Source: Chara braunii (taxonomy: Eukaryota > Plantae > Charophyceae). Taken from it: a stretch of DNA of 64,000 bases. The position numbers were made by a program, and so were the translations under genes. The stretch lies in assembly GCA_003427395.1 (NCBI GenBank), contig BFEA01000014.1, positions 1,407,446-1,471,445 of the forward strand, given 5' to 3'. The notes beneath the pieces were generated by a model that was not told where the DNA came from, did not search any database, and saw nothing but the letters and a program-made list of their open reading frames with translations. Numbering within the stretch: the stretch's first letter is position 1; the number at the start of each line of letters is the position of its first letter. Below are positions 3,980 through 56,487 of this stretch, one piece after another.

Positions 3980-4505
3980 ATCAACAGAAAAATTCCCATG
4001 AGAAATGAGAGTTGAAAAAACATTCCATAAAAAAAAAATCCTTCATATTTATAACTTATCATTCCAATGTTTGTCCAATTCTAAAATTTTCAATTTAATT
4101 TGATAAGTTCCCGTCTACATATGAGCTTTCCCTTCCAACTACATCTATTTGTTCAAGATGGAATGAAAGTCTGGACGAGTTTATGAAATGTTTTAATTAG
4201 ACTTTCATTCTATTACAACAAATATCGTTTAATTTAGATTGGATTAACCTATTTATGACTGGAAATCCTTACTTAGAATGGCAGTCCAATGAAAATATTT
4301 CATGAACTCATCCAGACTTTCATTCCATTTTTAGCATGCAGTTCAAATAAGAAGGGATACCCCATTCTTGGAAGGAAAGTTTTCAAGTAAAACGAAAAAA
4401 AAATAAATTGGAATTACATTTTTTAAGATGGAATAAGAATTTGAAATTTAAAATGTAATTTTACTATAGAATGATTATTTAATTCTGGGAAATTTTTCTG
4501 TTGAT
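3980..4505. mobile_element. AT-rich MITE (~525 bp), copy 1, inserted in the 5' region of the rolling-circle element
   Basis: TIR ATCAACAGAAAAATTCCCA / TGGGAAATTTTTCTGTTGAT. Internal inverted repeat (GATGGAATGAAAGTCTGGA.. / ..TCCAGACTTTCATTCCAT). A second copy lies in opposite orientation at 29807-30331. Confidence 0.9.
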
Positions 4506-4622: not shown

Positions 4623-7600
4623 ATGATGCAACCCCGCAACTTTTTACGTTTTCGCATACGCCCTAGATTAACAGGGGGAGGCCGAAAACGTGCAAAGCCT
4701 GAGACAGCCGACGACCGGGACACACGATTAGTGAAATAGAGAGCTGCGGCTCGTCTACGTAAGCTTAACAAAACAGAAGAAGCTCGACGTATACGGCTTG
4801 CACGCAATGCTGCATGGCACAAGGAAGCCCGGCGAAAGAAAAAGGAGATGGGAAACACGATTCATGATTATTCCCTGCCTCTTCTGACGACTTGCACTGT
4901 TGATTCCTTCGCGTCCTCATGTATGCCTCATGAAACCGAAACATCCATTGGTGGGCATAAAAATCATTTGCAGAAAAAAGGGCTTGCACCCCAGGCTTGC
5001 AAACTGCATGAAACCGTCTCTTTAATGTTTGTTCCTGAGCCTATTGTCAGTGTAATGTCTGGCGAACCACAATCAGGCATCTTAGTTCACACCCGCGATG
5101 CACATAACCATAAAGAGACAGGTATGTTCGTCCAATCGCTGGCCTTTGCGTGTTTACAATCACCTGCTTTAGCCGAGCAACGGCCACGACCACATGCCAG
5201 ACTGAAACATCTTGCCCGCAGAAAACATAAAGTCAGAACATTTGTACCGACGTCGCAAGAGATTGCGCACGTCCAGTCTGATACATATTCTGATAGATCT
5301 GACATGTTTTCAGTGCCTTCGTCCCCGCCTTTGTGTCGGTCGCAAATTAACATCTCTGTTTGCGAAAAATCGTGCTCGCTGTCGAAGCCAAGACATAGCA
5401 GAGTGACTGTATGTTCATCAGGTGAGCCTGTCAAGCACACGCGCCTCAAAAAATTGGCGAGGGCGCACGGTACGAACACTGCTGGCCAGGAAATTTTTAT
5501 TTCGGCCATTACAAACGACCGAAAAAGTGAAATTGCGAACCGCCTTGTCGAAAAGCTTGGGCCAGCGGGGTTGGCGGAAGTGGTCTGTTGCGTTTATGAC
5601 TGTTTTGTGTTATGCACTGACGCGTGTACATATTCGCCGCTCGAAACAGACGTTATCATTAGAATGCATGAATGCCTCGAAAACCCGGATTCCTCTGTGC
5701 ATTATGATGTGCTGCGTTACTATGACTGCTCTGATTTGTGTCCGCTGTTCCAGAGCCTTATGTTGTCCCGTCGTGGGGTGAATGTGAAAAACGATGACAA
5801 GCTTACATTCAATATCTGCATGGAATGCAATGGCGCATTGTTTAACCCTCGTCGCCACATTCGTTTGTCGAAATTCGCAATTGCCAACCACGTTTTCATC
5901 GGGGAATTACCCGCACCGCTCCAGCAAGCTACATGGCCTAAACTTCTCATGACAAGTCTCACAAACATACTAGCACAAACCAGAGTCATGCGTGGGGGAA
6001 TCCATCGTTCGATCCGTTCGCATCTTTTGGTCTTTGATGCCATTCCCGGTCCCGTGGCCATGCTTTCGCCAAAATCATGGACTAAAGATGCTTTCTATCG
6101 TATCATCCTTGCTGGTCCTTTCACAGACGCACAACTTGCTCGTGTCAGGAAGCTTCACTCCATTAAACATTGCATTGTTCATGATCTCTTGACGTTCTAT
6201 AATTCTCACAATCAACTTTACGATGGCGTTCGCTTGAACTTGACAGCGCTTAATGACATGGCTAATTTAGGCGAAGAATATGTCCCCGGGCCTGATACAG
6301 TCATTGAGCAAATGGAAGACGATGTGACGACCACTGAGGGTATCGACAATGAACAAGCAGGTTTAAATGCCCCTGCCGAAACAAGCACTGAGACAATGTA
6401 CATTGAGAGATCGGTTGTGTTTTTGCATGCGACCGCTCCTCTCGATTCCATCACAGAGAATGTCGTTGTCGACTTGTCCAATGGCATGACCAATGACTGC
6501 CCTGTTTTCACGTTGTCCAAATTTGCTAACCTTTTTGACCCGGACCTGAAAGCTAAAATGTTTCCGCATCTTTTTCCGATGGGTGCGGCCATTTTTGTGA
6601 GGTTGGAAGACATGTGCGTGTTTCTACGCAGCAATGCGCAAAACATTACTGTTTGTTGGCCTCTGGACGTTTTGCACAGTACCCATACTATATCATGGCA
6701 AGTTTCGACCGTCTCTCGCTTAACCGGGGTTACATGATGTCCAACATTACATGCAAGAGTCGCCCACGTATCCACCGCCCTATATCCGAAATCACAGCTG
6801 GCATGTTAAAAGCGGGCCTGGAAAACACATGTCGACGGCAGGCTGGCCATGACGTTCCACCAACTGACCCGGGGGTTGCACAAATGATGCATCATGTTGA
6901 GTGTGCGTCCGCGTAGGTGTGGGGAAGCAACGTCGAGCGGCGCGCATGCAGGTAAGAAGCTTTCGCGACGTGCGACCGCTTTGGCTAACCGAGTCTTTTC
7001 ATTACACTCACCCCCAACATGGACACATCATATGCCCTCGCTGCGTATGTTGGATTGCTCAACGTGGCCGACTTTTGTGATGTCTTTGTGACCGACCCGA
7101 ATGTTGGCCTAGATGATCTCAAGCAAATGTCCATGGCCGACAATGTTGCCTCAGCTAGACTCTTCGATCGTCTACAACAAACCTTTTTCGACGACGTCAT
7201 CGGGTTTGATTCTCGAACCCATAAAAGCATGGCTAGGGGGGGGGGTGTTTGGCAATGTGAAAGCCTGCTTTGGCATGGTCGAGACGCAAGGCCGTGGGAC
7301 GTTGCAGCTCCATTGTCTTGTTTGGCTCGAGAACACGCCGCCCACAACATGGCATTTTGATAATCTCCGTAATTTTAATGCCAACTTCAGCGAGCTGGTT
7401 ACATGATACACTGATAGTATCATTTCTGCACGTGCAACCTCTCTTGCTGAGTCGCTTCCTTGCTCATGTTGTTTCCATGCGTTGCCGGCTTACGTCGCAC
7501 ATCCGATTCCGTCAACAGCTCATCGCGCGCCCCCCCCAAAAAAACACGGGGCACCTACAGTGGAACCTCCGTCCGCAAAATGCATGTTCTGCAACACCCT

Positions 7601-10600
7601 CTTTAGCTCGCACCATCTTTTGAGGCAACAGTTGGTCATGGCTTCGCCGCCCCTGGAGCATAATGATCTTCATGACATGAATGAACCGCAAGGAGTGTGG
7701 GCACGCATGGTGGACGACCGGTTCCACACACATCCAGCAAGTGAGAAGCTCTTGGCAATGCCTCCAGGTCTCCCTACACTTGGCTTGACATTGCCTGCCC
7801 TTATTTATCTAGTGCAAACTCACCATTGGACACACACAACATCCTGTCTTAAGTATTCAAGGGCCAAAAAAAATCATCAAGTTTGTCGTTACCTTTTCCC
7901 AAAGATCCATTGTGATCGTACAGTTCTCCGCGACATAGGCATTGAGATTGAACGTGGTCTTGGAGACGAGTACATCAACGCGTACAATGACATTTTGTTG
8001 TTGACGTTTAAATGTAATCACGACGTTCAACCATTGTTCGGCGGTGCAGAGGCAGCGGAGAGTGTTTTTTATTCTTCTAAGTACACCATGAAAGATCAAC
8101 ATACAGTTGACTGTGCAATTGCTTTACGCTTGGCAGCGTTTGATGCGCGGCGACAGCGCGAGCTAGCGGTAGAAAAGAATGACGCACTGTCTCCGGAAGC
8201 CAAAACCCGCCACTGACTATCATCGCAGCTTTTCAACATGACAAATAAACAAGAAACAGCAGGTCCACTGTGCGCACTGTATCTTCTTCGCTAGTCGTGT
8301 GCGTACCTGAGCTACACTTACGGAACCCTGCCGCTCTATCACATGTTGAAACAACTCCAAGACGCGGACGATACTTTGTGCTCGCTGGATACATACAATA
8401 AGACATACACCGTCACTTGTCCACTCGACGACTACATGTTCCGCCCGCTAAGCCTCTCGCACCTTTGCTCACTTGCGGAGGACAGTTTTTTTCTTGAAGG
8501 TCACCCTCTCCGTATGCAAAAGAGTCTGGCGCGCCATACACAGGCTGCGATCCCTGTCGTCCCGTACTCGATGTGAATTCCGCATCGTGAGGCATGCACA
8601 GACGACGCTGCCAAAATGCGACATGCGCAATTGACATTGCTGCTTTTCAAACCATTTCGTGTTGTTCATGATTTGTTACCTCCGCATAGCACTTGGCATG
8701 ACGAGTTTGTCGCGTTTTATGAAATTATGTCGGCTTTTATGTGCGATATATATTTGCATATGCAGGATTACCACATTGCTCGTGAGCGGGCCACATAAAT
8801 GAGAAACAATGCCTACGCCGATGACCATGCCAACGATGATAGCGATGGCTTAACCACATCGTCGAATGGCAGCTCATAGAATGATACATGTCATGTTTTC
8901 CCTCCCTCAGACGACGAACAACCAGATGATGCCACTTTATCAGAGAACGAAGAGCAGGGGCCTTCCATACCAATGATCGTTGACAATGGTCAACCACTTC
9001 GTCATGCCCTAGCATCGTCGCGACTCCTGCTTGACTTGTTAGCGTCTTTTACGTTAGAAATATACAAATCCCTAATGCATAAGACCCTTCCTTCGCTGGA
9101 ACAACTACAAAAGCATCTGCATCATGATATCAAAGCATGTCTCGCATGGGCAAAAACTCCGTCTGTCCTTCCACCACAGGTCACACGTATGGAGTCTGAA
9201 TGGTCTGATTTGCCCTGCCCTACGCGTGTTCGCTTGATTGTTGACGAGCTTGACCCGCATAAATGTCTTCATTCCACAGCCCCTCTCTCGCCTGCTGACA
9301 GATCTTCCACATCGGCCTATCCGACTGTTCATGATGTGTCAGTCCAATTTTCTTTGAACGAGAAGCAATATGTGGCGTTCTCTTTGCTTGCCCGCGCTTT
9401 GCTGAACACGTGGCTGTCCCGAACCGACGCCGCCGGCGCGAATACACCACCCTCGCTTGTGCAAATGATCGACATGATAAAACAACAACAATTGCTTATG
9501 TTCCTCACAGGCGAGGGTGGCACAGGGAAATCGCACGTAGTATCTGCAATTGAAACGTTTGTCACGAGGTGGTATCATCCAAGAAGTGTAATGAAAACTG
9601 CGATGACAGGCAAGGCAGCGGTGGCTATTTAAGATATCACTTTCCATAGTTGGATCGGTATGCATAACCTTGAAGCGCACCATCGTTTCGAGCGCCGGGA
9701 CGCAGAACAAAAAGGGATTCCTCGTTTCACACCCGACTTGGCGTTACTTATAATTAACGAGTTTAGCATAGCATGATGGATAAAGAGAAATTTGTGCGTT
9801 TAGACCACGCCCTCCACAATGCACGTAAAATTGACCTCCCGTTTGGTGGTTTGCATATGCTTCCCATGGGTGATCTTTTTCAACTTCCCCCAGTTAGGGG
9901 CACGCCTGTCTGGCATGAACCAACAACTGGCCAAGCTCACACATCGTCTGATCACGAAGTATTTCACTTTTGGCGTTTATTCGACACTGTCTGTTTCCGA
10001 GCCGACCCGGAATGGGGGCGGCATTGTAAAAACGCAAGAATGGGCATACGGACAGATCAATTTATTGACATTATAAATAGCCGTTTTATTGATGAAACGA
10101 CCGACGCTCCACGGTCTTCGTCCCAAAGGTGATCAGTTCCCTGTCTTTGTGACGCCTGACAACAATGCTCGGGTCCGCCTGTCGCACAAATACACATGCA
10201 CATTGTGTGATCACCTTCTGCCAGGCCACCATCCTGTTCGTGTCATGACTGACTTTGGCAAAGCATTGGACAAACGAAACAAACAAGATATCACACATAT
10301 CATGTCCCTGCCTGACAACAAGCTCAAACGTTTCGTTGCATTCCTCGATCTCGTTCCTGGGATGCCATTGTTTTTCACGCAGAACATTGACCTAGCTCGA
10401 ATGATCGCTAACGGAACTTTTGGTTTCCTTCATTCCCTTCAATTCCCTCCACAAACCGCCTTCTCCTTAGTTCGTGATAAAAATGTTGACATCTATGTTC
10501 TTGTGTCTTCTCAACCACCGGATGTTGCATTTGTCCGTGTTCCTCGTCATGCTTCGTTTGAGAAATTCCCGTCTTCGATTCGTAGCGATCTACCTGCCGA

Positions 10601-11324
10601 CATCTACCCTGTTTTTAGGTGAAGGCCACAGAAAGCTGAACGCATTTTTCTCCCAACTCCTTCGAATGTGCCAGAAAGAATGTGTAGCTTACGGGCGCTG
10701 CAGTTCCCGTTCGTGTCAGCGATTTCTTCTAAAGTTTACAAGATTCAAGGCGACACATCATCATCGTTGGTTGTTGCAGCTTGGATAGCATCTTCTGACA
10801 AAGGCAAACGTGTGCATAACGTTCCACAACAAGGTTACATCATTGTTTCGCGTGTTGTTCACAGGTCTGCGTTTTTCGTGCTTCAAAAATTTACGAAAGA
10901 GCACGCCGCGTTTTTTGTGCCCGACCAGTTGATGTTGCTTGAACATGCACGGCTCGAGCAACTTTCATTGAACACGCTTTCAGCGAACGATACGTGGGGC
11001 CCATCATTTCCTTTGCCTCTATCTTTGAACACTCCATGCACATCGCTCTCTGTGCCGCCCATTCCTGACTCTTTGCCACATGTGAGTCATTCGCGCATAC
11101 ATCGTCATCCAGTTCCGCCCTCCGCTGCTTTCCTGTCTACAGCTTCGTCCACCACCTGCCCTTCCCCATGTTCTTCTGCTTTGCTGCCTCTTTCAATTAT
11201 GCACAGGCCCTCGTCCCGGTCTGCGTTATCCTCTGTCCCAGCTTCTCTGCATGTTCCGTCTTCACATTCTTCGGTGTCTTTGCTCCCATGGGTTCCATCA
11301 CTTAACGTGATGTTTGTACCATGA
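4623..11324 (+). pseudogene. Helitron RepHel (N-terminal DUF6570-like region, HUH Y2 Rep, PIF1-family SF1B helicase), disrupted by stops and frameshifts
   Basis: Ordered motifs across ORF fragments. N-terminal region: CMEC...KFAIANHVFIGELP. Rep: KMFPHLFP(YG); motif 1 SLFITLTPN (~6990); motif 2 VETQGRGTLQLHCLVWL (~7280); motif 3 FKCNHDVQ...FYSSKYTMK (~8010-8090). Helicase: Walker A FLTGEGGTGKS (~9500); degenerate Walker B IINEFS (~9750); PFGGLHMLPMGDLFQLPPV; GMPLFFTQNI...ANGTFG; QFPFVSAISSKVYKIQG; YIIVSRV. The frame extends upstream of 4848 to ATG 4623 through a TAG at 4737. Confidence 0.93.
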
Positions 11325-11937
11325 CCTTCACGGTTCATTTTGGCTCGGTGATGTGACAATAGGCGATTACATGGACCTTGTCATGGAGACCTTCCCTTCC
11401 GTTTTGACTGCCAACTGTTTCGTGTATGCTCATGGTGTGGCGCGGCGTGATCTTGTCTTCGCTGATCGTAACATGGATGCTCATAGACATGGACGGCCTT
11501 ACGAAACATTTGACCACTTCTTCTTGCCAATGCACGTCCATGGTAACCATTGGACGCTTGGCTACATACATTTGTGTTCGCGGACAATCTTCTTCTATAA
11601 TAGCTTCGGCTCGTCCTCGTCCACTTTCTTCCAAAACATGTCCCATTGGCTTCAAAATCGCACTAATTTCTTGCATACTCTGGTTGACATGCCGCGAATG
11701 ACCATTACCGGCCCGCTGCAGCATAACTCCTACGATTGCGGCATGTTCGTGCTTATCATGCTTCGCCATCTTTTTCTCCCCCAACCGTTCTCACATCTGC
11801 TTGATTTTGACCATCATGACATGGATTTTTACCGTTCCTTTGTTTATGATGAACTTACTACGAAAGTCCTGAAAGCCTTGATGCCTCATCCTCGCTCCAC
11901 TTTCCCAGTCCCTCCGGCTTACTCTTGTCGTTCGTAG
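11314..11937 (+). pseudogene. Ulp1/SENP-like (peptidase C48, clan CE) cysteine protease domain; probably the frameshifted C-terminus of RepHel
   Basis: Motifs WLGDVTIGDYMDL, FFLPMHVHGNHWTL (catalytic His), FFYNS (Asn at the usual Asp) and PLQHNSYDCGMFVL (Gln, Cys). It overlaps the end of the Pro/Ser-rich tail of the helicase ORF in another frame. Confidence 0.88.
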
Positions 11938-12332
11938 CTCCTTTTATGCCTTCCTTTCTTCTCTGCTTTCCTCTTTGTACACTTCTAGCAACACCGAATT
12001 CAGTTGTCGTTTAGTACGTTCTTCGCCTGGATTGCTATTATCTCTTTCTTTCATCGTTTTATTCGCTGCGCAACAACATTGTTCTCCATCTTTTTAATCA
12101 TCTTCATACATTTCTGCTTTTCACATACCCCTTGTTGTCCTCTCTGCCAATGCTTGCTCGGTTCTCTTCTGTTCAGTCTGACATATGCTGCTGCCTTCGT
12201 TCACAATGTATGCTTGCAGTGCATTACTTTCATCTCGTTGCTTAGACAACATAACTATTCTGCCTGAGGCTTTGTTCAACATCTGCTATCCATTTTGCTT
12301 ACACTCTACTTTTCCATTCTTCTTTTCAGGAC

Positions 12333-13162
12333 ATGGCTTCTACAAGAGGCGATCCACGAAATTCTGCATCTGCTCCCTTGCCACCGCTCAAACGGAGCAG
12401 GCCCACACTTGTTGAGCAAGCGCGGATATCCAGGGACAAACATCCTAGGGGCCGACAAATCATTCACAACAAAACCCTTGAAATGGAAGAATTTTCAAAA
12501 ATCCCGAAAAACCTCCAGCCCAATACGACGTGGTCGAGAGAGGCCTCCTTCTGCACACCATGTGGCTATGGGCAGACGACAAGAGAGTCCTGGACATGAC
12601 GCTCGGGAACATGGGGGAAGAGGACGGTGTTGAAGACACGAATTGGACGCTCGCCCACACGTCCAGCGACGCTGACCTTCTGGTGCTGCTGCGAAGAGGC
12701 ACGGTTTACGATTACGCAGAAAACCTCACAAATCCGCCTATCAGAATGGTGGTCGCTTTCTCACACACGACTGAGCACAAGTATTTCAGCCAGCGGCTGA
12801 TCCCTGCGTTCAACACAAATGTCAAGTTCATGGATCCATGACCAACAATTGTACAGGAGCTGCCACCGGTAGCACCTGACGTTCCACATGCAGATGCTCA
12901 CGCACAACCAATTCCACCACCGCCAGTCTTGCTCCCGCATCAACTCACACCGCCACCTCAGCTTCCGATTCACAATGCTATGCAATATCCTCCTTCTGCT
13001 TCGCTTCCACAGACTTCTTCCCATGCAAATGATTCAGAAACGTCACTCATAGCTTCAACATTTTCTGCCACACTTTCGCAAGCTCCTGTTGATGCTCTTC
13101 CTCATGCCGCGTGTGATGCCATGTCCCAGCACCCAGACAACGACCCGACAGGTTCTGTTTAA
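12333..13162 (+). pseudogene. Helitron accessory ORF A, unknown function (paralogue of 13641-14450)
   Basis: ORFs 12333-12599, 12530-12841 and 12929-13162 join via a frameshift near 12520 and a TGA at 12839. Co-linear similarity with ORF B; Pro-rich tail. Confidence 0.75.
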
Positions 13163-13640
13163 CGAGCTATGCCTTCGCTTCTGCATACCATACGCACATT
13201 GTGAGCAAGTCATGGTCTGCTTCGGTCTCATCTGCATAGGGCCACCTGCTTGTTAATCAAATGCAAGTGCGAGCGTTTTGTAGTCAACAGCAGAATAGGG
13301 TTGTTACAGAGGGTTTCCCTCCTCGTTTCTAAAATATAGTTGATGTAGTGGTCTGCCTTCTTCTCCTCAACCCCATCATCGCCACCGCATGTGTATACCC
13401 TTTCGTTTCCGTTCCGTGAAATTCTCCGCTCGCTTTAGATAACTCGCCCGCATGAAATACGTGGTCAGTCTCCCTCTCATGATCTCTCTTTCTCTTTCTC
13501 TTCCATCATGTCTCTTTCAATTCTGTCATCATCTCTCTCGCTCTCTCTCTGATCACATCTTCAGTGAATGAAAGGGTTTAAGCATCAACTTGTTTCGGGC
13601 GACCATTGACGACACCTGTTCACCTCTGTGTTTCCAGATC

Positions 13641-14450
13641 ATGGCCTCAACAGTCTTGGTCGCTGCTGCAGGCGAAGGACGTGACCCTTTGCCACCTTTC
13701 AAACGTGACAGTGGACAAATGCAGCAATTCCCAAAAGACATGCAATGGAAACGCCCAAGGCGGCAACAAATTGTCCATAACAAGACAGTCGAAATGGAGA
13801 ATTTCATAAGGTCGAAAAAACCTACAGAGCAATGTCGGGTCATCGAAAGAGGATTGCTTGTGCACTCGATCTAGCGACACGCAAACGGGATACGTGTTAT
13901 CAACATGGCATTGGCAGACGTTGACCAACAAGCAGCAGTTCAAGACATTCACTGGACACTTACACACACATACGGCGACACACAGGCTGAGACATTGGTC
14001 TTACTCAGGACAAGCACAATATATGACTACAAAGACAATTTTGAGATACTGCCTGTCGGAACACTTCTCACGTTCACTGCAACAACGGGTCACAAATACT
14101 ACAGCAGACGGAACATTCCATCATTCAACACAAACATCAGATTCATGGAGCTGCAGCCTGCAGTTGTCGCACGACCGCCAGAACTGGATGTGTTTGATGC
14201 ACCGCCAGATGTTGGTGATGACGAGGATGACGACGATGATGCTGACTATGATGATGACGAGGAGGAAGACACGGAGGACGGCGATGGGGAGGTGTTTGAT
14301 GCACCGCCAGTTGACATGGATGCGCCACTGCTTCCCCACGAAATTTTGGAGACCAGCGATCAACCGCCCGCATCTTCTGACCAGACAGACACATCTCCAC
14401 CACCATGTTCAGACCACGTTACTGGCTACTACGTTGGCAGATCAACATAA
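13641..14450 (+). pseudogene. Helitron accessory ORF B, unknown function, with acidic tail
   Basis: Single frame from ATG 13641 to 14450 with one TAG at 13872, where ORF A has Trp. Shares blocks PLPPxKR, QIxHNKTxEMExF, ERGLLxH, WTLxHT, LVLLR, YDY, HKY and IPxFNTNxxFM with ORF A. D/E-rich C-terminal tract. Confidence 0.8.
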
Positions 14451-14671
14451 AATGTCCTCCCTTCACTTAGTTGGCTATCCTTTACTACGTGCGCATGCTG
14501 TTGCCCTCATCCATGCACAACACGGTTGGGTGGTCGAATCACTTCAGATGACACTTTTTTTTTTTTTTTTTTGACAGCTTTTCTCTTTTGTTCTTCGATG
14601 TTGTGTGCATCTGCCACATAGACGGGTGAACAGTTGAGCACTCTTACTTCATTGCCCTTACAATTTTGTTT

Positions 14672-16020
14672 GGTTTCCTGTTCGAGTTTTGTTTGGTCGT
14701 CTCCTCCGTCAGTCTACGCACAGCCACGGCATATCAGGCCACTGTACAATACTTGCATGTCACCTGTACCCACAACATATCAGACATGCTCTGCTCTGCC
14801 CTTCTTTTTTGCAGTTGACTGGCCACAAAACGCTCTAATTTTGTTTGCCTGCCCTTTGCCTCTCTTTTTTGTAGTTGACTGAGGTTTTTCTGTGGCTTGT
14901 TTTTGTCCATACTCAGCATTCTAGTTTCTAGCAGATGCTATATCTTAGACCGCAATTGGGTCAACGCACCGACACTCCTTGTACAACTGGCTTCGCCGCA
15001 AGCATGCTTCGGTTCATTGGGCATGGAAGCCAAAGTGGTTGGCCCTGTAGAGTGAAGCATAGTCATGTCAGCACGTAAGAGGGGGGAGGGGTGTGGTTTC
15101 ATGTTCGAGTTTTGTTTCGTCATCTCCTCCTTCAGTCTACGCACAGCCACGGCATATCAGGCCACTGTACAATACTTGCATGTCACCTGTACCCACAACA
15201 TATCAGACATGCTCTGCTTTGCCCTTCTTTTTTGCAGTTGACTGCCCACAAAACGTTCTAATTTCGTTTGTCTGTGCTTTGCCTCTCTTTTCTGCAGTTG
15301 ACTGAGGTTTTTCTGTGGCTTGTTTTTGTCCATACTCAACATTCTAGTTTCTAGCAGATGCTACGTCTTAGACCGCAATTGGGCCAACGCACCGACACTC
15401 CTCGTACGACTGGCTTCGCTGAAAGCATGCTTCGGTTCACTGGGCATGGAAGCCAAAGTGGTTTGCCCTGCAAAGTGGAGCATAGTCATGTAGTTTCCTC
15501 TTCGAGTTTTGTTTCGTCGTCTCCTCCGTCACTCTACGCACAGCCACGGCACATCAGGCCACTGTGCAATACTTGCATGTCACCTGTACGCACAACATAT
15601 CAGACATGCTCTGCTTTGCCCTTCTTTTTTGCAGTTGACTGCCCACTTTCTAGCAAATGCTACATCTTAGACCGCAATTGGGTCAACGCACCAACGCTCC
15701 TCGTATGACTGGCTTGGCTGCAAGCATGCAGGGGGGGGAGGGGTGTGGTTTCCTCTTCGAGTTTTGTTTCGTCGTCTCCTCCGAGTCCGCCAGTCTACGC
15801 ACAACCACATGTCACCTGTACGCACAACATATCAGACATGCTCTGCTTTGCCCTTCTTTTTTGCAGTTGACTGTCCACTTTCTAGCAAATGCTACATCTT
15901 AGACCGCAATTGGGTCAACGCACCAACACTCCTCGTACGACTGGCTTCGCTGCAAGCATGCTTCGGTTCATTGGGCATGGAAGCCAAAGTGGTTTGCCCT
16001 GCAAAGTGGAGCATAGTCAT
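14672..16020 (+). repeat. Tandem array of ~423-bp units (2 near-complete and 2 internally deleted copies)
   Basis: Units start at ~14672, 15095, 15492 and 15747 (TTCGAGTTTTGTTT...CACAACATATCAGACATGCTCTGC...CTTAGACCGCAATTGGG). Near-identical spurious ORFs are offset by 423 bp (14734 vs 15157). Confidence 0.95.
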
Positions 16021-25625: not shown

Positions 25626-26519
25626 ACCACCACTACCCCCGCCGCCAGAAAATGCCGATTCCAGTGAGTTTGGGGCGGGTTTTTCGGTAGGCCGGCGTTC
25701 GAATAATGATGGGGGGGGGGGGGGCAGGACCTAAGTCCCAAGGGGGGGGATGTCAGGCCTTTTTCCGGGAGGCGTTCGGGCGGTGGATTGCAGTCTCGGC
25801 CTTTCAAACGACCGGCCTGGTCCAATGTGTGGCCGGGCTCGTGGGCGGGAAAGGAACGTTTTCGCGAATTGTTGGCGAAAATGTTCATTTCCCGCCTGGT
25901 GTTTGAGTTCGTATAACATATTTCACCGTCTTTTTTTTTCTTTTTTTTTTTTCTTTTTTTTTTGCGTTTTGAAATTCAGTTGTGGAAACCGGTGACGGTC
26001 CTATTAGGTTTCATTGGCCTGGTCACACAGCCGCCATGGCCGCAATCTCCCCGTCGGGTGTTCCCCGTGCCGCCGTGCACAATACCCACGTGCTACCATC
26101 ACCGTTGACGACGACCGTGTGTGCGTGCCTGCGTCTCGTTCCCTGCTGCGTCGTCCTTCGCGAGTCGGCTGTTCGTTGCTGCCGTGAATGAGACCTCTGC
26201 GCCTCCATCGTCGTTGGCAGCGACCGTGTGTGAGTGTCTGTGTCGCGGGTGTGCCCTGTTCCTGGATAGCCATAATGGTCCTCCGCGCGTCCGCTGTGCC
26301 TTGCCGCCATGTGAGAATCGCCCTTGCGCCGTAGCCCTCTGCAGCGGCAGTGCCCCTCCAACAGTGCTTGCGTGTGTGTCGTGCTTTCGTCGTTGCTTGC
26401 ACTCGCGTGTGCTGCCGTCTATTGCAGAATCGTGTTCCTCCACGTCAGCGAAGGTGTGTGTATGTCAGGGTTTGCACGCGGGCGTGTGTGTCTGNGAGNG
26501 AGNGAGNGAGNGAGNGAGN

Positions 26520-29806: not shown

Positions 29807-30331
29807 ATCAACAAAAAAAATTCTTATAATTAAATAATCATTCTATAGTAAAATTACATTCTAAATTTTAAATTTTCATTCCATCTTAAAAAATGTCATT
29901 CCAATTTAAAAAACATTCGTCTTACTTGAAAACTTTTCTTCCAAGAATGCGGTATCCTTTCTTATTTGAACTACATGCTAGAGATGGAATGAAAGTCTGG
30001 ATGAGTTTATGAAATATTTTAATCGGACTGTCATTCTAAGTAAGGATTTTCAGTTATAAATAGGCTAATCCAATCTAAATTAGAAGATATTTGTTGTAGT
30101 AGAATGAAAGTTTAATTAAAACATTTCATAAACTCATCCAGACTTTTATTCCATCTTGAACAAATAGATGTAGTTGGAAGGGAAAACTCATATTTAGACG
30201 GGAACTTATCAAATAAAACTGAAAATTTTATAATTGGACAAACATTGGAATGATAATTTATAAATATGAAGGATTTTTTTTTATGGATTGTTTTTTTAAC
30301 TTTCATTTCTCGTGGGAATTTTTTTGTTGAT
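29807..30331. mobile_element. AT-rich MITE copy 2 (inverted relative to 3980-4505)
   Basis: Full-length reverse-complement similarity to 3980-4505; ATCAACA...TGTTGAT termini. Confidence 0.9.
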
Positions 30332-34080: not shown

Positions 34081-37000
34081 GTGGAAGAGGCGGAATACCG
34101 AATGGAGGGTGACCCTATCTCAGTGGTGGTGTGAGCATTGGAACGAGAAATAAGAACGGCGAAATCAGACAACATCTAGGAGAGAAACAAAAAAGATGGA
34201 TCAAGGTTCTGAAGGAAAAGGGAATAAAGGCACACGATAAAATGTCAAAGGATACCTTTTACAAACTGTTATCAAGCCACACCCAGCAACAGATGACTGA
34301 ACTGAAACACCCGGTTGATGGGTCCAGCCTCCCATGCCTGGACGGCAACTGGTATGCTCCAGTATGCAAGGGTGTATTATGAAGACATACTTACACCCAG
34401 GCGGTCGCACGACAATGTGAACAACATGTGGGACATCACGACTGTCAAACCGCAAACCACCACTAAGCCGGATTTGGACAGGCCACTCACCCTGGAGGAA
34501 CTATTTCAGACGCTGAAGACAATGGTGAGGGACAAATCACCCGGGGTAGACGGTCTGTCAATGGAGTTCTACGCCGCGAAGTTGGGAGTGTACGACCCGC
34601 TGCTGGTAGAACTCTATAACGAGATCCTAGTAGGGGCCAGACTAGGGAAAGGTAGTACTATGACCCATAAGGTGATCGCAGTCCTTTTCAAGAAAGGTTA
34701 CAAGGCAATGGTAAGAAACTGGCGTGCAATTTCTCTTCTCAAAATCTCCTATAAAATCATTGCGAAGTCCTTGGCTCAAAATGTATTCAAGTATCTCCCA
34801 AAGTTGGTGGAGAAGGACCAGGGGGCCTTCGTACAAGGACGCTTGATCTTCAACAACATAGTCACAACGATAGAGACCTTCAAGGTGGTACAATAAGAGA
34901 ATATGGACATGGTAGTGCTCTTATGGGACTTGGGATAAGCGTACGACAAGGTAGGATGGTCCTTTGTCCTCACCACCTTGAGGAGGATGGGATTTGAAAA
35001 CAAATTTTGCTCTTGGATAATAGCCATGTACATATTTTCCTCGCCTGCAGTGATGATCAACAACCACTTGTCAAACCTATCTCAGTTGTCAAGGGCACTT
35101 TGTCAAGGTTGTCCACTCGCCCCATCATCTTCGTGCAACAACTAGAAGTACTGCTCAACAAGATCCGTCACCACACGGAGATCAAAGGAATGCATCTGCA
35201 CAACGATGAAGACTGTAGGGTCAAGGCCCTGACAGACAATCTGTTCGTGGTGAATGAGAACTCGGTCGCGTCGCTATCAACGTTGAAGGTGATTCTAGGT
35301 GTCACTGAGTACTAGAGGCTGTCGGAGGCAACAATTAACTGGAACAAGTCGACCTACTTGTTACCAGCGCAGTTCTCACTAAAGGTGGAATGGGGTAAAA
35401 GTGGGCAAGAAGGAAAGGTTTTTGAGTGTTCTTATCAATCTGCATATTGACGTATCCGCCCAAGGGCACCTCCCGCAACAATCGATTGAAGCGCGTCTTG
35501 GACTGTGGGGCTCAGCATGACACCTTTCATTAGTAGGTAGAGCGCTGGTCACCAGTGTGGCTTTGTTTTCAATCAAATGGTTTGTCACCACGATAAGGGG
35601 ACTTGCAGCAGGAGTGACTGGCCTCCCGGTTCATATGGGAACCAAGGGTCACCAACAGCGAGGGTTTCATTTCTAAAGTCGCCCTCGACACCTTGTCTTT
35701 TCCATGAGAGATTGGGGGTTTAGGCATTCTAGATCCGACCAGAAGGAATCAAACCCAACTCCGAAACTGAGTGGTCAAAGTAGCCGTAAAAAACCCATCG
35801 GAGCACCGGATAACCCTAACAGAAACTCCTGATGAAAGAATGAGACCTGTGCAGGGCCAAAGATGTCTGGGCATGTTTCTTGATGCCATCATTCAGAAAG
35901 AGGAGACAAAAATTGAGTTTTTGGGATGCTATTCGGAAGGCATGGAAGAAAATGCCCCCAGACGTGCAGTCTACCCCNNNNNNNNNNNNNNNNNNNNNNN
36001 NNNNNNNNNNNNNNNNNNNNNNNNNNNNNNNNNNNNNNNNNNNNNNNNNNNNNNNNNNNNNNNNNNNNNNNNNNNNNNNNNNNNNNNNNNNNNNNNNNNN
36101 NNNNNNNNNNNNNNNNNNNNNNNNNNNNNNNNNNNNNNNNNNNNNNNNNNNNNNNNNNNNNNNNNNNNNNNNNNNNNNNNNNNNNNNNNNNNNNNNNNNN
36201 NNNNNNNNNNNNNNNNNNNNNNNNNNNNNNNNNNNNNNNNNNNNNNNNNNNNNNNNNNNNNNNNNNNNNNNNNNNNNNNNNNNNNNNNNNNNNNNNNNNN
36301 NNNNNNNNNNNNNNNNNNNNNNNNNNNNNNNNNNNNNNNNNNNNNNNNNNNNNNNNNNNNNNNNNNNNNNNNNNNNNNNNNNNNNNNNNNNNNNNNNNNN
36401 NNNNNNNNNNNNNNNNNNNNNNNNNNGCGCTCTTCCCGTAGATGGCTCGACATGAACATTTGGGATAACTAGGGTCCGAAGAGGGGCAGTCCGGATCGAG
36501 GACCTGTGGTCTACGCCGTTCGGCAGGTGAAGCCCCTAATGGAGGTGAAGAAGTTTCTGAAAGGTCTGCAACGAGTCGAAGAACATTAAAGACAGGTGAT
36601 CGGGGCAATTCCCCCGGACAGGATGTTTCTACTGGGGCTGGAGGGGGTCGATCCCTGGGTACCAGGTACATCTCTGAACTGCAACTGGAGGAAACCGCGT
36701 TGTGGAAGGTCATCAACATCTCACTGAGCGGGTTCAAAAAGGTGGAAAGGTGGCGGAGCGTAGGGCCTTCCAACACATTGTCCCGAATTGAAGAAGAAAC
36801 AATCCTAATTTGAGACAACCCTGCTCAAGTTAGGGTGGTGGAGGTAAAGAGCATCAAATCTTGCACCCGGGTTCTGTCCTAGGTGGAGAAAGTCCCACTG
36901 CGTCAATTATGTATTGATCCATTGACTTGGGATGAAGAAAAGTTGAAGAAGATGAGCCCAGTCTGAAACTATTAGACTACTCGGTGGCAAAAGGCTACCA

Positions 37001-39900: not shown

Positions 39901-42269
39901 ATAGAGAACAGAGTACTGAAACCAGTTCAGCAGTCTCAGAATTGGGCAAGGAGATAAGGCTGGTTTGTATTAGGTCAGTATGCCCCTTGTCATTTGACAG
40001 GCTCAATGTTTGGGTTTGGAGAGTAAGCAGCGCTACCGCCTGTAAGCTAAGCTGGCTGATGCTGTCAGTACACCAGGTTGAATTGTGAGGCCTCTTTATA
40101 TTATGAGTCAAATTGAATTGGTTTCTGTTTTCTTTAAAAAAAAAGAAAAAGGAAAAAAAAAAGCCGTCAGGATACATTCGTTACTATTCATAGCAGCGGA
40201 CGAATCTGTCCACCTTCTTTGGAACGATGCACAACCATAGGGCCCGTGCCGCTGGGGAGGTCACTAGCCGGACATGTTGGTCCCATGTTCATGGTCGGAA
40301 AGCATGACCCTGGGCTGAAAATTATCCAGGGTCATGATATCTTAGTACGAATACCATTTGTAACCACTCGTAGCTGGTTCCAAGCTATTCCTGGTGAATC
40401 CCGACTCTGTGCCCGTGCGTAGGCCCCGGCGACAGGGCGAGCGCCGGACCCGTGAGGAGGGGACTGGTCCGAATGCTCCCTCTCCCTCCCTCCCCCTCCA
40501 CCCCGGTCTCTCTCTCTCTCTCTCTCTCTCTTACCGGCCCCAACTCTGTTGCAGACATCTCAGCAGATGGACGCCGGCGCACCATCGGACTCCTCGGCTG
40601 AGGCAGAGGAGAGCGGTGGGCCGCCGCCCGCGGAACGTATTGGTGCTTGGAGAAGCTGGGAGACAGAGGAGGAGGAGGAGGAGGCATGTGCCGTGTCACG
40701 ACGCGGTTGATTGATTGGTTTGGTGTCTGACGGGCACATCGGCGGTTGGCCTTCAGGCACAGCCAACTAACAATTCACGTGGGCGAACGCATCGGCGCGT
40801 AGCACGACACATGTACGGCTCAAAAAGCAGACACGTGGCAAGTGGATTGATTGACGTACAACGACGACGTGTGCCTTTACTAGGTGACACGTGGCACGTT
40901 ATCCTGCGGGTAAGGGTCCCCCCCGCCTCCCCGGTGCCCCTGCCCCCCNNNNNNNNNNNNNNNNNNNNNNNNNNNNNNNNNNNNNNNNNNNNNNNNNNNN
41001 NNNNNNNNNNNNNNNNNNNNNNNNNNNNNNNNNNNNNNNNNNNNNNNNNNNNNNNNNNNNNNNNNNNNNNNNNNNNNNNNNNNNNNNNNNNNNNNNNNNN
41101 NNNNNNNNNNNNNNNNNNNNNNNNNNNNNNNNNNNNNNNNNNNNNNNNNNNNNNNNNNNNNNNNNNNNNNNNNNNNNNNNNNNNNNNNNNNNNNNNNNNN
41201 NNNNNNNNNNNNNNNNNNNNNNNNNNNNNNNNNNNNNNNNNNNNNNNNNNNNNNNNNNNNNNNNNNNNNNNNNNNNNNNNNNNNNNNNNNNNNNNNNNNN
41301 NNNNNNNNNNNNNNNNNNNNNNNNNNNNNNNNNNNNNNNNNNNNNNNNNNNNNNNNNNNNNNNNNNNNNNNNNNNNNNNNNNNNNNNNNNNNNNNNNNNN
41401 NNNNNNNNNNNNNNNNNNNNNNNNNNNNNNNNNNNNNNNNNNNNNNNNNNNNNNNNNNNNNNNNNNNNNNNNNNNNNNNNNNNNNNNNNNNNNNNNNNNN
41501 NNNNNNNNNNNNNNNNNNNNNNNNNNNNNNNNNNNNNNNNNNNNNNNNNNNNNNNNNNNNNNNNNNNNNNNNNNNNNNNNNNNNNNNNNNNNNNNNNNNN
41601 NNNNNNNNNNNNNNNNNNNNNNNNNNNNNNNNNNNNNNNNNNNNNNNNNNNNNNNNNNNNNNNNNNNNNNNNNNNNNNNNNNNNNNNNNNNNNNNNNNNN
41701 NNNNNNNNNNNNNNNNNNNNNNNNNNNNNNNNNNNNNNNNNNNNNNNNNNNNNNNNNNNNNNNNNNNNNNNNNNNNNNNNNNNNNNNNNNNNNNNNNNNN
41801 NNNNNNNNNNNNNNNNNNNNNNNNNNNNNNNNNNNNNNNNNNNNNNNNNNNNNNNNNNNNNNNNNNNNNNNNNNNNNNNNNNNNNNNNNNNNNNNNNNNN
41901 NNNCCCCCCCCCCCCCTGTGCCCCCTTTCCCCCTTCCCTCTTCCCCATCTCCTTTTTTTTTGTTTTTTAATGATAAAACATATCCCGTCTCCTCCTCCTC
42001 TTTCTGAGAAGACGACTTTTTTGGGTGGTCTTCGATGATACAGTTAAGTGTTTTGGAGATCGGAGAAACGATTTACAAAAAAAAAAAGGGAGAAGAAAAG
42101 AAAAAANAANTAAAAAAAAGGGAAAAAATAAAAATGAAAGGAATAAAAAGGACGGAAAAAAAGAAAATCTAAAAAGAAGAAAGAAAGAAAAAAATTGCTT
42201 AGCGTGCGGGGGAGGGCAATGGTTGTGGTCATTATGTCCAACCGGTTTTTTCTGATACACAACAATTCC

Positions 42270-54138: not shown

Positions 54139-56487
54139 TGCTGTTTTCTGTGGAGAGTCATTTCTGTAGGAGGAAGGTATAAGAATGTTTTATGTTTCCT
54201 TATCAACTCTGTAGAGAGAAGGGAGAAGGTATAAGGATGATGTTGGGAGAATCAATCAGTCCTGTTGCACAGGTGTGTTCTCATCGGATTGAGGATTGAC
54301 GAGACGAGATCGCGTGTGCATCTCGGGCTGTGGTTCAACAACATTTGTAGTACTCCGTGCTCAGCAATCAAGCCTGTAAGGAGAGGCAGTGTTTTGTTAT
54401 CGACAATCAAGACAGTAGAGATAGGATAGGAATGATGTTGGGAGGATCAGGCCTGTTGCGGAGGTGTATTCTGCTCCGAGCTCAAGGAGTGTTTGTAGTA
54501 TTTAGTTTTTAGATGGATTGCAATTTGCACCTAAATGCGAAGGGGAAAAAAAAAGAAAAGAAATACTCTTTTGTGTTCAGTACCGTATTTGATGCTGTTT
54601 CCTGTTCCGCAATCAAGTCTGTAAGAAGAGAGAGGAATGATGGTGAAGGAATTATTATACCCGTCGCAGATGGTATTCTCATTGTGTCAACGTTCTCGCG
54701 GAGCAAGTAGGGTTTACGAGTCACAGCTTCCGAGGTCGAGACTTGACCTTCAGAGGGACATTGCAGCTGTGTCTGTCATCATCGAAGCCTATCGCACGCA
54801 CGTATGACTACCGTCTTCCCTGAAGCAGATGGCATCACCCATCATAGCTTCATATGGCCCCCCAAAACTTGTCCCTGGTACGGTTAGTTATAATGACTAT
54901 GTCTTCCATTTTGTGGAAGACGGGTGAGCTCAGGGGTCGGGGTTGAGACTCCGGAGGGTCGCTGTGTTTCAGGGTGTTGTCATTGCTGTCTTGTATTTTG
55001 AATAGGCTTTACCATTGAGGCTCTTGGAGGGAGGCTATCTCCCCCATACTCGAGGACGGAGGATGGAGGGAGAGAGGTGGGGACGGGGTAGAAAAGGGCA
55101 GGACGAGAGGAAGGAGGGAAAGGGGAGGGGGCAGACGTCGTGGGTACGGAATGCATGCCTTCATGGTTTCCCCTTCACTGCATTCTTTTTTGCAGGATGG
55201 TGATAACTGTAGTCGTAACTGGGGTCGAGTGTTCAGGTGTAGAGACTCTCTCCCTGGTGGAGCGGGAACAAAGACAGATGGTGTTCTTCCATGGAGTGGA
55301 TGGATTGCTCTGTGGCCTGTACTCGTTTGCCGCTCTGCCAACTGGTCTCTCTGTATTTGTTTGGACAGTAGAAAGCTTAGGTAGTCGTGGATCGTTTGCT
55401 GATCTCTGTCACTTAGGCCAGAATCGAGGGCTTGGAGGTGATGCTGTTTGATATTGTGTGACCACCATGAGTCCATTCTGGCGACCAGACTCTTATTATT
55501 ATTTTAATAATAATATGTAATTCTTTCTTTAGCAAGAGCTCTATGTTCGGGTTTGCTCTCGTCCACGTGTACAAAGCCTTCACTACATGAGTACTTTCTC
55601 AGGAAGTGATCTTCTCTATGAGAGGATGATCATTGTCGTGTGTCTTTCGTCTACCTCTCTGTTTGTTCTATGTGCCAAAGAAATGTCTCACAAAGTTTCT
55701 AGACTATTCTTTCTTCTGCAATCTGCTTCGGTCGTCTTCCTCATTTCGTTTGCATGTAGCACCATTCTCAAGTTCCTTGCAATCTTCACTCTCAAGTCGC
55801 ACGAGGCAGTTAAAAACACACACGCACATAACATACATGGGGGCAGANNNNNNNNNNNNNNNNNNNNNNNNNNNNNNNNNNNNNNNNNNNNNNNNNNNNN
55901 NNNNNNNNNNNNNNNNNNNNNNNNNNNNNNNNNNNNNNNNNNNNNNNNNNNNNNNNNNNNNNNNNNNNNNNNNNNNNNNNNNNNNNNNNNNNNNNNNNNN
56001 NNNNNNNNNNNNNNNNNNNNNNNNNNNNNNNNNNNNNNNNNNNNNNNNNNNNNNNNNNNNNNNNNNNNNNNNNNNNNNNNNNNNNNNNNNNNNNNNNNNN
56101 NNNNNNNNNNNNNNNNNNNNNNNNNNNNNNNNNNNNNNNNNNNNNNNNNNNNNNNNNNNNNNNNNNNNNNNNNNNNNNNNNNNNNNNNNNNNNNNNNNNN
56201 NNNNNNNNNNNNNNNNNNNNNNNNNNNNNNNNNNNNNNNNNNNNNNNNNNNNNNNNNNNNNNNNNNNNNNNNNNNNNNNNNNNNNNNNNNNNNNNNNNNN
56301 NNNNNNNNNNNNNNNNNNNNNNNNNNNNNNNNNNNNNNNNNNNNNNNNNNNNNNNNNNNNNNNNNNNNNNNNNNNNNNNNNNNNNNNNNNNNNNNNNNNN
56401 NNNNNNNNNNNNNNNNNNNNNNNNNNNNNNNNNNNNNNNNNNNNNNNNNNNNNNNNNNNNNNNNNNNNNNNNNNNNNNNNNNNNNNN

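Follow-up and report, generated by a model that had tools for sequence, protein, structure and literature searches.

Does the Helitron at 4623-11937 (forward strand) of a 64,000-nucleotide (nt) stretch of Chara braunii DNA make a polyprotein that is cut by its own protease? In this stretch, called the window throughout, a Rep-helicase gene (RepHel) is followed by a cysteine protease domain of family C48. According to the original prediction, the two form a polyprotein whose protease clips off the N-terminal 19 residues after a Leu-Thr-Gly-Gly (LTGG) motif, exposing a basic end that resembles a nuclear localisation signal, in a virus-like maturation step. Our analysis leads to a different reading. 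The element is a heavily mutated, dead copy of a Helitron of the DUF6570 type (HLE2-like, judging by its domain marker); the C48 domain is a conserved accessory module with a role other than maturation; and the LTGG is a chance motif. Taken as a joint statement of all four parts (dead copy, accessory C48, non-maturation role, chance LTGG), we consider this reading probable.

The Helitron identity is evident from the domain content. A Pfam scan found DUF6570 (E 1e-13) within 4848-6737, N-terminal to Rep; the terminal part of Helitron_like_N within 7113-7406; PIF1/P-loop matches in 8973-9632 and 9773-10132, all under the curated cut-offs (best E about 3e-4); and Peptidase_C48 (E 1.2e-17) within 11314-11937. 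The presence of a RepHel with a clan CE/C48 module had been predicted and is confirmed by these domains and by the identity to a second Chara copy, L001. The helicase, which lies C-terminal to Rep and has an undamaged Walker A motif (GEGGTGKS), is assigned to the PIF1 type because it is 54-65% identical to the L001 helicase, whose gene model carries PF05970 (PIF1). The reading path was set by tblastn against L001. Frame 0 is opened by two consecutive ATG codons at 4623, reads MMQPRNFLRFRIRPRLTGGGRKRAKPETADDRDTRLVK up to a TAG at 4737 and resumes beyond it as an open stretch of 665 amino acids (aa) at 4740-6734. The path stays in frame 0 until about 6580, changes to frame 2 until about 7250, returns to frame 0 until 9770, changes again to frame 2 until about 10100, is back in frame 0 until 11321 and then enters frame 1, which encodes the protease. 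The "restored frame" of the original prediction can be recovered, but doing so requires reading through 13 in-frame stops (4737, 6914, 6953, 6986, 7404, 8214, 8292, 8574, 8796, 8877, 9630, 10620 and 11308) and at least four frame switches ahead of the protease. The family has the HUH and Tyr motifs of a Rep nuclease, with the two-Tyr motif reading YSSKYTMK in the window and YCCRYATK in L001; the HUH motif is mutated in the window (GTLQLHCLVW, i.e. QLH, versus GTLHLHCLVW, i.e. HLH, in L001). Given the stops, the frameshifts, the change of HUH to QLH and the replacement of the catalytic Asp of the protease by Asn (see below), the copy is dead, and the object described here is a pseudogene.

L001, on BFEA01000018.1, is the locus of CBR_g19772 of Chara braunii, which is the only annotated relative of the N-terminal part; word-based protein searches returned one annotated Chara protein. 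The two copies share about 50% protein identity and about 65% identity in coding DNA. L001 has the same order of genes as the window: RepHel (approximately 9200-15490), C48 (15906-16523) and two OB-like open reading frames (ORFs), the latter matching the two ORFs downstream of the window element. No non-coding homology was found between the window copy and L001 and, with related copies only about 65% identical in their coding DNA, the ends of the element cannot be mapped. L001 also contains a stand-alone C48 ORF upstream of RepHel (7749-8393), which encodes 214 aa from an ATG start and has an undamaged catalytic H/D/Q/C set. It is 34-37% identical to the two downstream C48 domains (window and L001), and no counterpart was found upstream of RepHel in the window.

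The C48 domains of the window and L001 are 51% identical and occupy the same position after RepHel. Synonymous divergence (dS) is saturated in all domains, leaving only the non-synonymous divergence (dN) for comparison: dN between the two copies is 0.39 for C48 and 0.34-0.44 for three pieces of RepHel. This similarity indicates that C48 has diverged along with RepHel under purifying selection. Outside Chara, a C48 domain follows the helicase in loci L002, L004, L006, L007, L024 and L045. In a tree of the helicases, clade A contains both Chara copies, with P0173 (Aphanomyces), L002 and L024 as their sister group, while clade B consists of L004, L006, L007 and P0180/L045. Within these two clades, C48 is present in every locus with a sufficiently long contig (L001, L002, L024, L004, L006, L007 and L045). 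A third clade, made up of full-length Phytophthora-type proteins (P0152, P0153 and L005/P0157), lacks C48. The C48 domains of L006 and L045 are closer to generic SENP-like proteins than to the Chara C48, and for this reason we allow for one or two acquisitions; possible histories are a single gain followed by a loss, or two gains. As judged by these comparisons, C48 is a real, old and conserved accessory module of this Helitron lineage and has been preserved by purifying selection as long as RepHel has.

The nearest helicase relatives of the Chara element are from oomycetes (Aphanomyces astaci P0173, then the Phytophthora-type proteins) and from unidentified metagenome organisms, not from land-plant Helitrons. 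One of the loci without C48, L005 (5970-13502 of a Joint Genome Institute metagenome contig), encodes an intact RepHel of 1741 aa; behind it, in the same orientation, is an open gene of at least 2511 aa for which no Pfam entry is recorded. In clade B (L045, 2251-3088; L006, 3099-3928), C48 begins within about 20 nt of the helicase stop and is split into pieces in different frames, approximately 80 nt apart, suggesting short introns in that host.

To which branch of clan CE does the protease belong? Ulp1/SENP enzymes bind a folded SUMO domain and cut after its Gly-Gly, and adenain recognises short linear (M/I/L)XGG motifs. The C48 domain of L001 alone matches the catalytic domain of yeast Ulp1 (1EUV) over its whole length (E 9.6e-11), followed by SENP5, SENP1 and SENP3. 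A ten-sequence profile, six of whose ten members are non-Helitron C48 proteins, matches SENP1 with E 3e-57. The AlphaFold (AF2) model of the window domain has a predicted local distance difference test score (pLDDT) of 82.6 and a predicted template modelling score (pTM) of 0.81. A Foldseek search with this model returned SENP5 and Ulp1 as the best matches, at template modelling (TM) scores of 0.70-0.72 (0.72 for Ulp1) and E values down to 4e-13 (SENP5); NopD, NEDP1 and bacterial CE effectors came next, and none of the 50 best matches was an adenain-type protease. By sequence and predicted fold, therefore, the protease is of the Ulp1/SENP type and not adenain-like. It shares with yeast Ulp1 and human SENP1, 2, 3 and 5 the fold, the His/Gln/Cys residues, the Asp (in the relatives) and a pair of Trp residues, but differs from them in having only 20-27% sequence identity, no N-terminal targeting region and, in the window copy, Asn for Asp. 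Adenain and the other viral maturation proteases of clan CE cut after the Gly-Gly of (M/I/L)XGG-type motifs; in the Helitron family, no cleavage motif is conserved either at the N-terminus or where domains meet.

The catalytic residues of the window domain were examined in a C48 alignment (A1). His80, Gln137 and Cys143 are present, and the H/N/Q/C motifs are as originally described. Position 97, located 17 residues past the His, is Asn in the window and Asp in both C48 domains of L001, in P0182 and in all other aligned relatives, in agreement with the expectation of an Asp at this site. Within A1, the Asp to Asn substitution is confined to the window copy, whose protease is probably inactive or impaired. 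W11 (in WLxD) and W81 (in HW), the Trp pair that flanks the Gly-Gly tunnel, are invariant in A1.

Could the window copy alone have captured a fragment of a host Ulp1 gene, or could C48 simply belong to an unrelated neighbouring gene? Helitrons are known to capture genes (PMC11417382), and C48 and RepHel are in different frames in the window. A second Chara copy that is about 50% diverged, however, has C48 at the same place and in the same order, with a dN like that of RepHel, and C48 occurs in two helicase clades outside Chara. The protein libraries searched contained no close host homologue: among 1.84 billion representative proteins, the best match to C48 has 27-35% identity (E 3.5e-15), which argues against recent capture from a host. 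(This search returned no match longer than 1252 aa, so that RepHel-C48 fusions would not be detectable in it, and most metagenomic C48 sequences are fragments.) Capture by one copy is ruled out by L001 and the metagenomic relatives, and we consider both this and the neighbouring-gene reading exceedingly improbable. For self-processing as originally predicted, it can be said that Gly-Gly is where C48 enzymes cut, that the two Trp of the tunnel are conserved and that P0182 has helicase and C48 in one frame. The frame at 4623 begins MMQPRNFLRFRIRPRLTGGGRKRAK and continues into a basic stretch, exactly as described, so that LTGG does lie beside basic residues. The leader that holds it is not conserved, however. 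From ETA (4701) on, the window and L001 are clearly homologous at the protein level, across the basic region RKLNKTEEARRIRLARNAAW, where the two proteins are 56% identical over 45 codons (dN 0.45, dS 3.6) and where the TAG at 4737 of the window corresponds to Lys in L001. Upstream of 4698, in the 75-nt leader that encodes LTGG, the ungapped nucleotide identity to L001 is 22-37% in five registers, equivalent to background. The L001 residues facing LTGG are LCGR, CGRG or AVGE, depending on the register, and LxGG occurs in none of them; DNA alignments of the leader and of the linker between the two copies are too diverged for tracing indels. More distant relatives give the same picture, as none of eight related gene-model proteins has an (L/I/M)xGG ahead of the TRVMRGG of DUF6570. 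Seven of the eight come from outside Chara, and the eighth is the Chara model P0001, which lacks the N-terminus because its start lies within RepHel; one of the seven is P0158, the N-terminal protein of L004, whose locus has C48 downstream. The original prediction had named lack of LxGG conservation as a result that would refute it and, as far as the two Chara copies and their relatives reach, the motif is not conserved.

The protease itself also fits poorly with self-processing. An enzyme of the Ulp1/SENP type, rather than the adenain type, needs a folded SUMO body, which a leader of 19 residues cannot provide. There is no Gly-Gly between helicase and C48 in the window, L001 or P0182, and this weighs against a polyprotein because self-release by such a protease would be expected there. 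The window reading path contains three (L/I/M)xGG motifs, against 0.7 expected from composition; the other two, MRGG at 5988 and LFGG at 8034, are both conserved but lie inside folded domains. Some points weigh against our own reading. By chance, an (L/I/M)xGG would seldom fall among the first 30 residues (0.65% of shuffles), which favours self-processing. LTGG was chosen after the fact, and in view of this rarity we argue for a chance origin from the lack of conservation and not from frequency alone. Furthermore, just two Chara copies are readable, both of them decayed, and the conservation test rests on these two and on distant relatives. Finally, the putative substrate (SUMO, NEDD8 or ubiquitin) is assigned by similarity alone. 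On balance, we regard cleavage after LTGG by the element's own protease as very unlikely and conclude, from the comparisons above, that LTGG is a chance motif specific to the window copy, situated in a leader that is not conserved.

The MRGG of DUF6570 is conserved in P0152-P0155, P0157 and P0001, reads IVRGG in P0156 and is absent from P0158. Basic STPR-like repeats are found at the start of P0152, P0155 and P0158. At the N-terminus of P0158 (L004, 5282-9478), a basic unit of 47 residues (ERNARLKYQSDY[KR]ARKLSLESPEES...) occurs at least four times in tandem, giving an expanded form of the STPR-like basic region that is single in the Chara copies.

With processing set aside, RepHel and C48 might still be one polypeptide in functional Chara elements, either in frame or joined by splicing of a short intron, such that the protease is tethered without being released, as in the transposases of Ginger1 and Mutator-like elements (MULEs). 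The in-frame fusion postulated in the original prediction does exist in L002, where P0182 is a single ORF of 755 aa comprising the helicase C-terminus, a Ser/Thr-rich linker of about 150 residues and a complete C48. In L024, too, one open frame runs from the end of the helicase through the linker into the first part of C48. Both Chara copies, however, have C48 shifted by +1 from the helicase frame, and the net difference in length between their linkers is 201 nt, or 67 codons. The shifted frame had been correctly recognised for the window, where the helicase end and a Pro/Ser stretch are in frame 0 up to a stop at 11322 and C48 is in frame 1. Frame 0 of the window remains open from the helicase to 10 nt beyond the start of the C48 homology, and in L001 the C48 frame has no stop in the 400 nt upstream of C48, reaching to within 12 nt of the RepHel-frame stop. 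The frame-0 linker of the window is weakly similar to the linker of L001 read in the C48 frame (score 55; SSVSLLPWVP versus SSVPVVSWTP). This likeness and the open frames would be compatible with an originally continuous frame that was broken independently, at different positions, in the two copies. On the other hand, the linker score is marginal, being reached by 14 of 300 shuffles, and open frames count for little in pyrimidine-rich DNA. The "Pro/Ser linker" of the original prediction is indeed rich in Pro and Ser in frame 0, but since all three frames are open in this stretch its translation is weak evidence for coding. Splicing was considered as well: both copies have GT..AG pairs that suit the frames and have good donors, namely GTGAGT in the window (11082) and GTAAAT in L001 (15493), the second of which contains the RepHel-frame stop. 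The putative introns are not of the same phase in the two copies (0 versus 2) and GT..AG sites are common by chance, and we have not adopted the intron model. Two further observations speak for a separate protein, namely the stand-alone, ATG-initiated C48 ORF upstream of RepHel in L001 and the HELIANO survey, which in its main text reports C48 and 16 other domains in ORFs other than RepHel (PMC11417382). We consider one polypeptide and two separate proteins about equally probable for Chara on these sequence data.

What, then, might the protease do? In active elements, C48 would most likely act as a protease for a ubiquitin-like modifier, with SUMO the most likely candidate, and most likely not as a maturation protease. 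It would strip the modifier from proteins of the host or of the element, either in trans or while tethered to RepHel. A role of this kind has been suggested for the Ulp1 domains of Mutator-like and Ginger1 transposases. A more specific proposal is that a sub-lineage of DUF6570-type Helitrons (the Chara, Aphanomyces-like and unidentified protist elements) may use Ulp1/SENP as a C-terminal domain of RepHel, the tethered protease acting where rolling-circle transposition takes place and freeing chromatin or replication factors of SUMO or a related modifier; in its strongest form, the protease would also trim RepHel at a Gly-Gly. We put this forward tentatively and think it rather unlikely to be correct in full.

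C48 as Helitron cargo is already known. The HELIANO survey (Nucleic Acids Res 2024, PMC11417382), as far as its main text goes, counts Peptidase_C48 as one of 20 domains that Helitron-like elements stably carry and treats DUF6570 as almost exclusive to the HLE2 group. The elements described there resemble ours in having a RepHel (DUF6570, Helitron_like_N, PIF1) with C48 at a conserved position beside it, but their C48 is said to be in "different ORFs", whereas it is in frame with the helicase in P0182 and ambiguous in Chara. The main text of the survey mentions neither "Chara braunii" nor "Charophyt" nor "Streptophyt", and among the papers searched we found none connecting Chara braunii Helitrons to a protease. 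For Ginger1 and Mutator transposases, C-terminal Ulp1 domains have been described, and for Helitrons OTU domains, with the suggestion that these act on the ubiquitin/SUMO pathway during transposition (PMC2836005). The Chara element is similar to Ginger1 and Mutator-like elements: in each, a DNA transposon has an Ulp1 catalytic domain attached C-terminally to its transposase or lying beside it, and a role in the SUMO/ubiquitin system is proposed. Ginger1 and Mutator-like elements are DDE cut-and-paste transposons, however, while the Chara element encodes a rolling-circle HUH-helicase, and the roles in both are only proposed. With the OTU domains of Helitron2/Helentron elements it has in common a deubiquitinase-type cysteine protease as recurring Helitron cargo (PMC11417382, PMC2836005), but family and fold are different, OTU there and clan CE C48 here.

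Our additions are modest: an in-frame fusion in one relative and the distribution of C48 at the level of clades. Several DNA transposons that are unrelated to one another carry proteases of the ubiquitin/SUMO system: OTU in Helentrons, and Ulp1 in Mutator-like, Ginger and now Helitron elements. One Helitron lineage has kept an Ulp1-type domain beside its helicase over deep divergence, fusing the two at least once, and this lineage constitutes a defined family in which the role of the protease could be assayed in an intact member. The picture of Helitron maturation is unchanged; virus-like self-cleavage, which would have been new, is unsupported.

Table 1. Features of the Helitron copy in the window, with coordinates counted from the first nucleotide of the window.
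Feature	Coordinates	Strand	Remarks
Leader with LTGG, copy-specific (MMQPRNFLRFRIRPRLTGGGRKRAK)	4623..4697	+	ORF start or untranslated; no detectable homology to L001
Basic STPR-like N-terminal region of RepHel (ETADDRD...RKLNKTEEARRIRLARNAAWHKEARRKKKE), conserved	4698..4850	+	TAG at 4737; 56% aa identity to L001
DUF6570 region of RepHel, frame 0, core motif TRVMRGG	5430..6584	+	PF20209, E 1e-13; 53% identity to L001
Rep (HUH) nuclease region, frames 2 then 0	6572..8780	+	Stops at 6914, 6953, 6986, 7404, 8214, 8292 and 8574; QLH
PIF1-type helicase	8880..10982	+	Frame switches near 9770 and 10096-10116; stops at 9630 and 10620
Pyrimidine-rich linker, Pro/Ser-rich in frame 0	10983..11310	+	3/3 frames open; no Gly-Gly
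Ulp1/SENP-type C48 protease domain (by sequence and predicted fold), frame 1	11311..11937	+	PF02902, E 1.2e-17; 51% identity to L001 C48

The assembly gaps of the window (2067 N in total) are at 26495-26519, 35978-36426, 40949-41903 and 55848-56487, all of them outside the element. Approximately 118 nt upstream of the RepHel ATG lies an AT-rich repeat of 505 bp (4001-4505) with an internal palindrome (4094-4392). An inverted copy, 90.7% identical, is found 25 kb away at 29807-30310, and by its sequence the repeat looks like an insertion of the miniature inverted-repeat transposable element (MITE) type.

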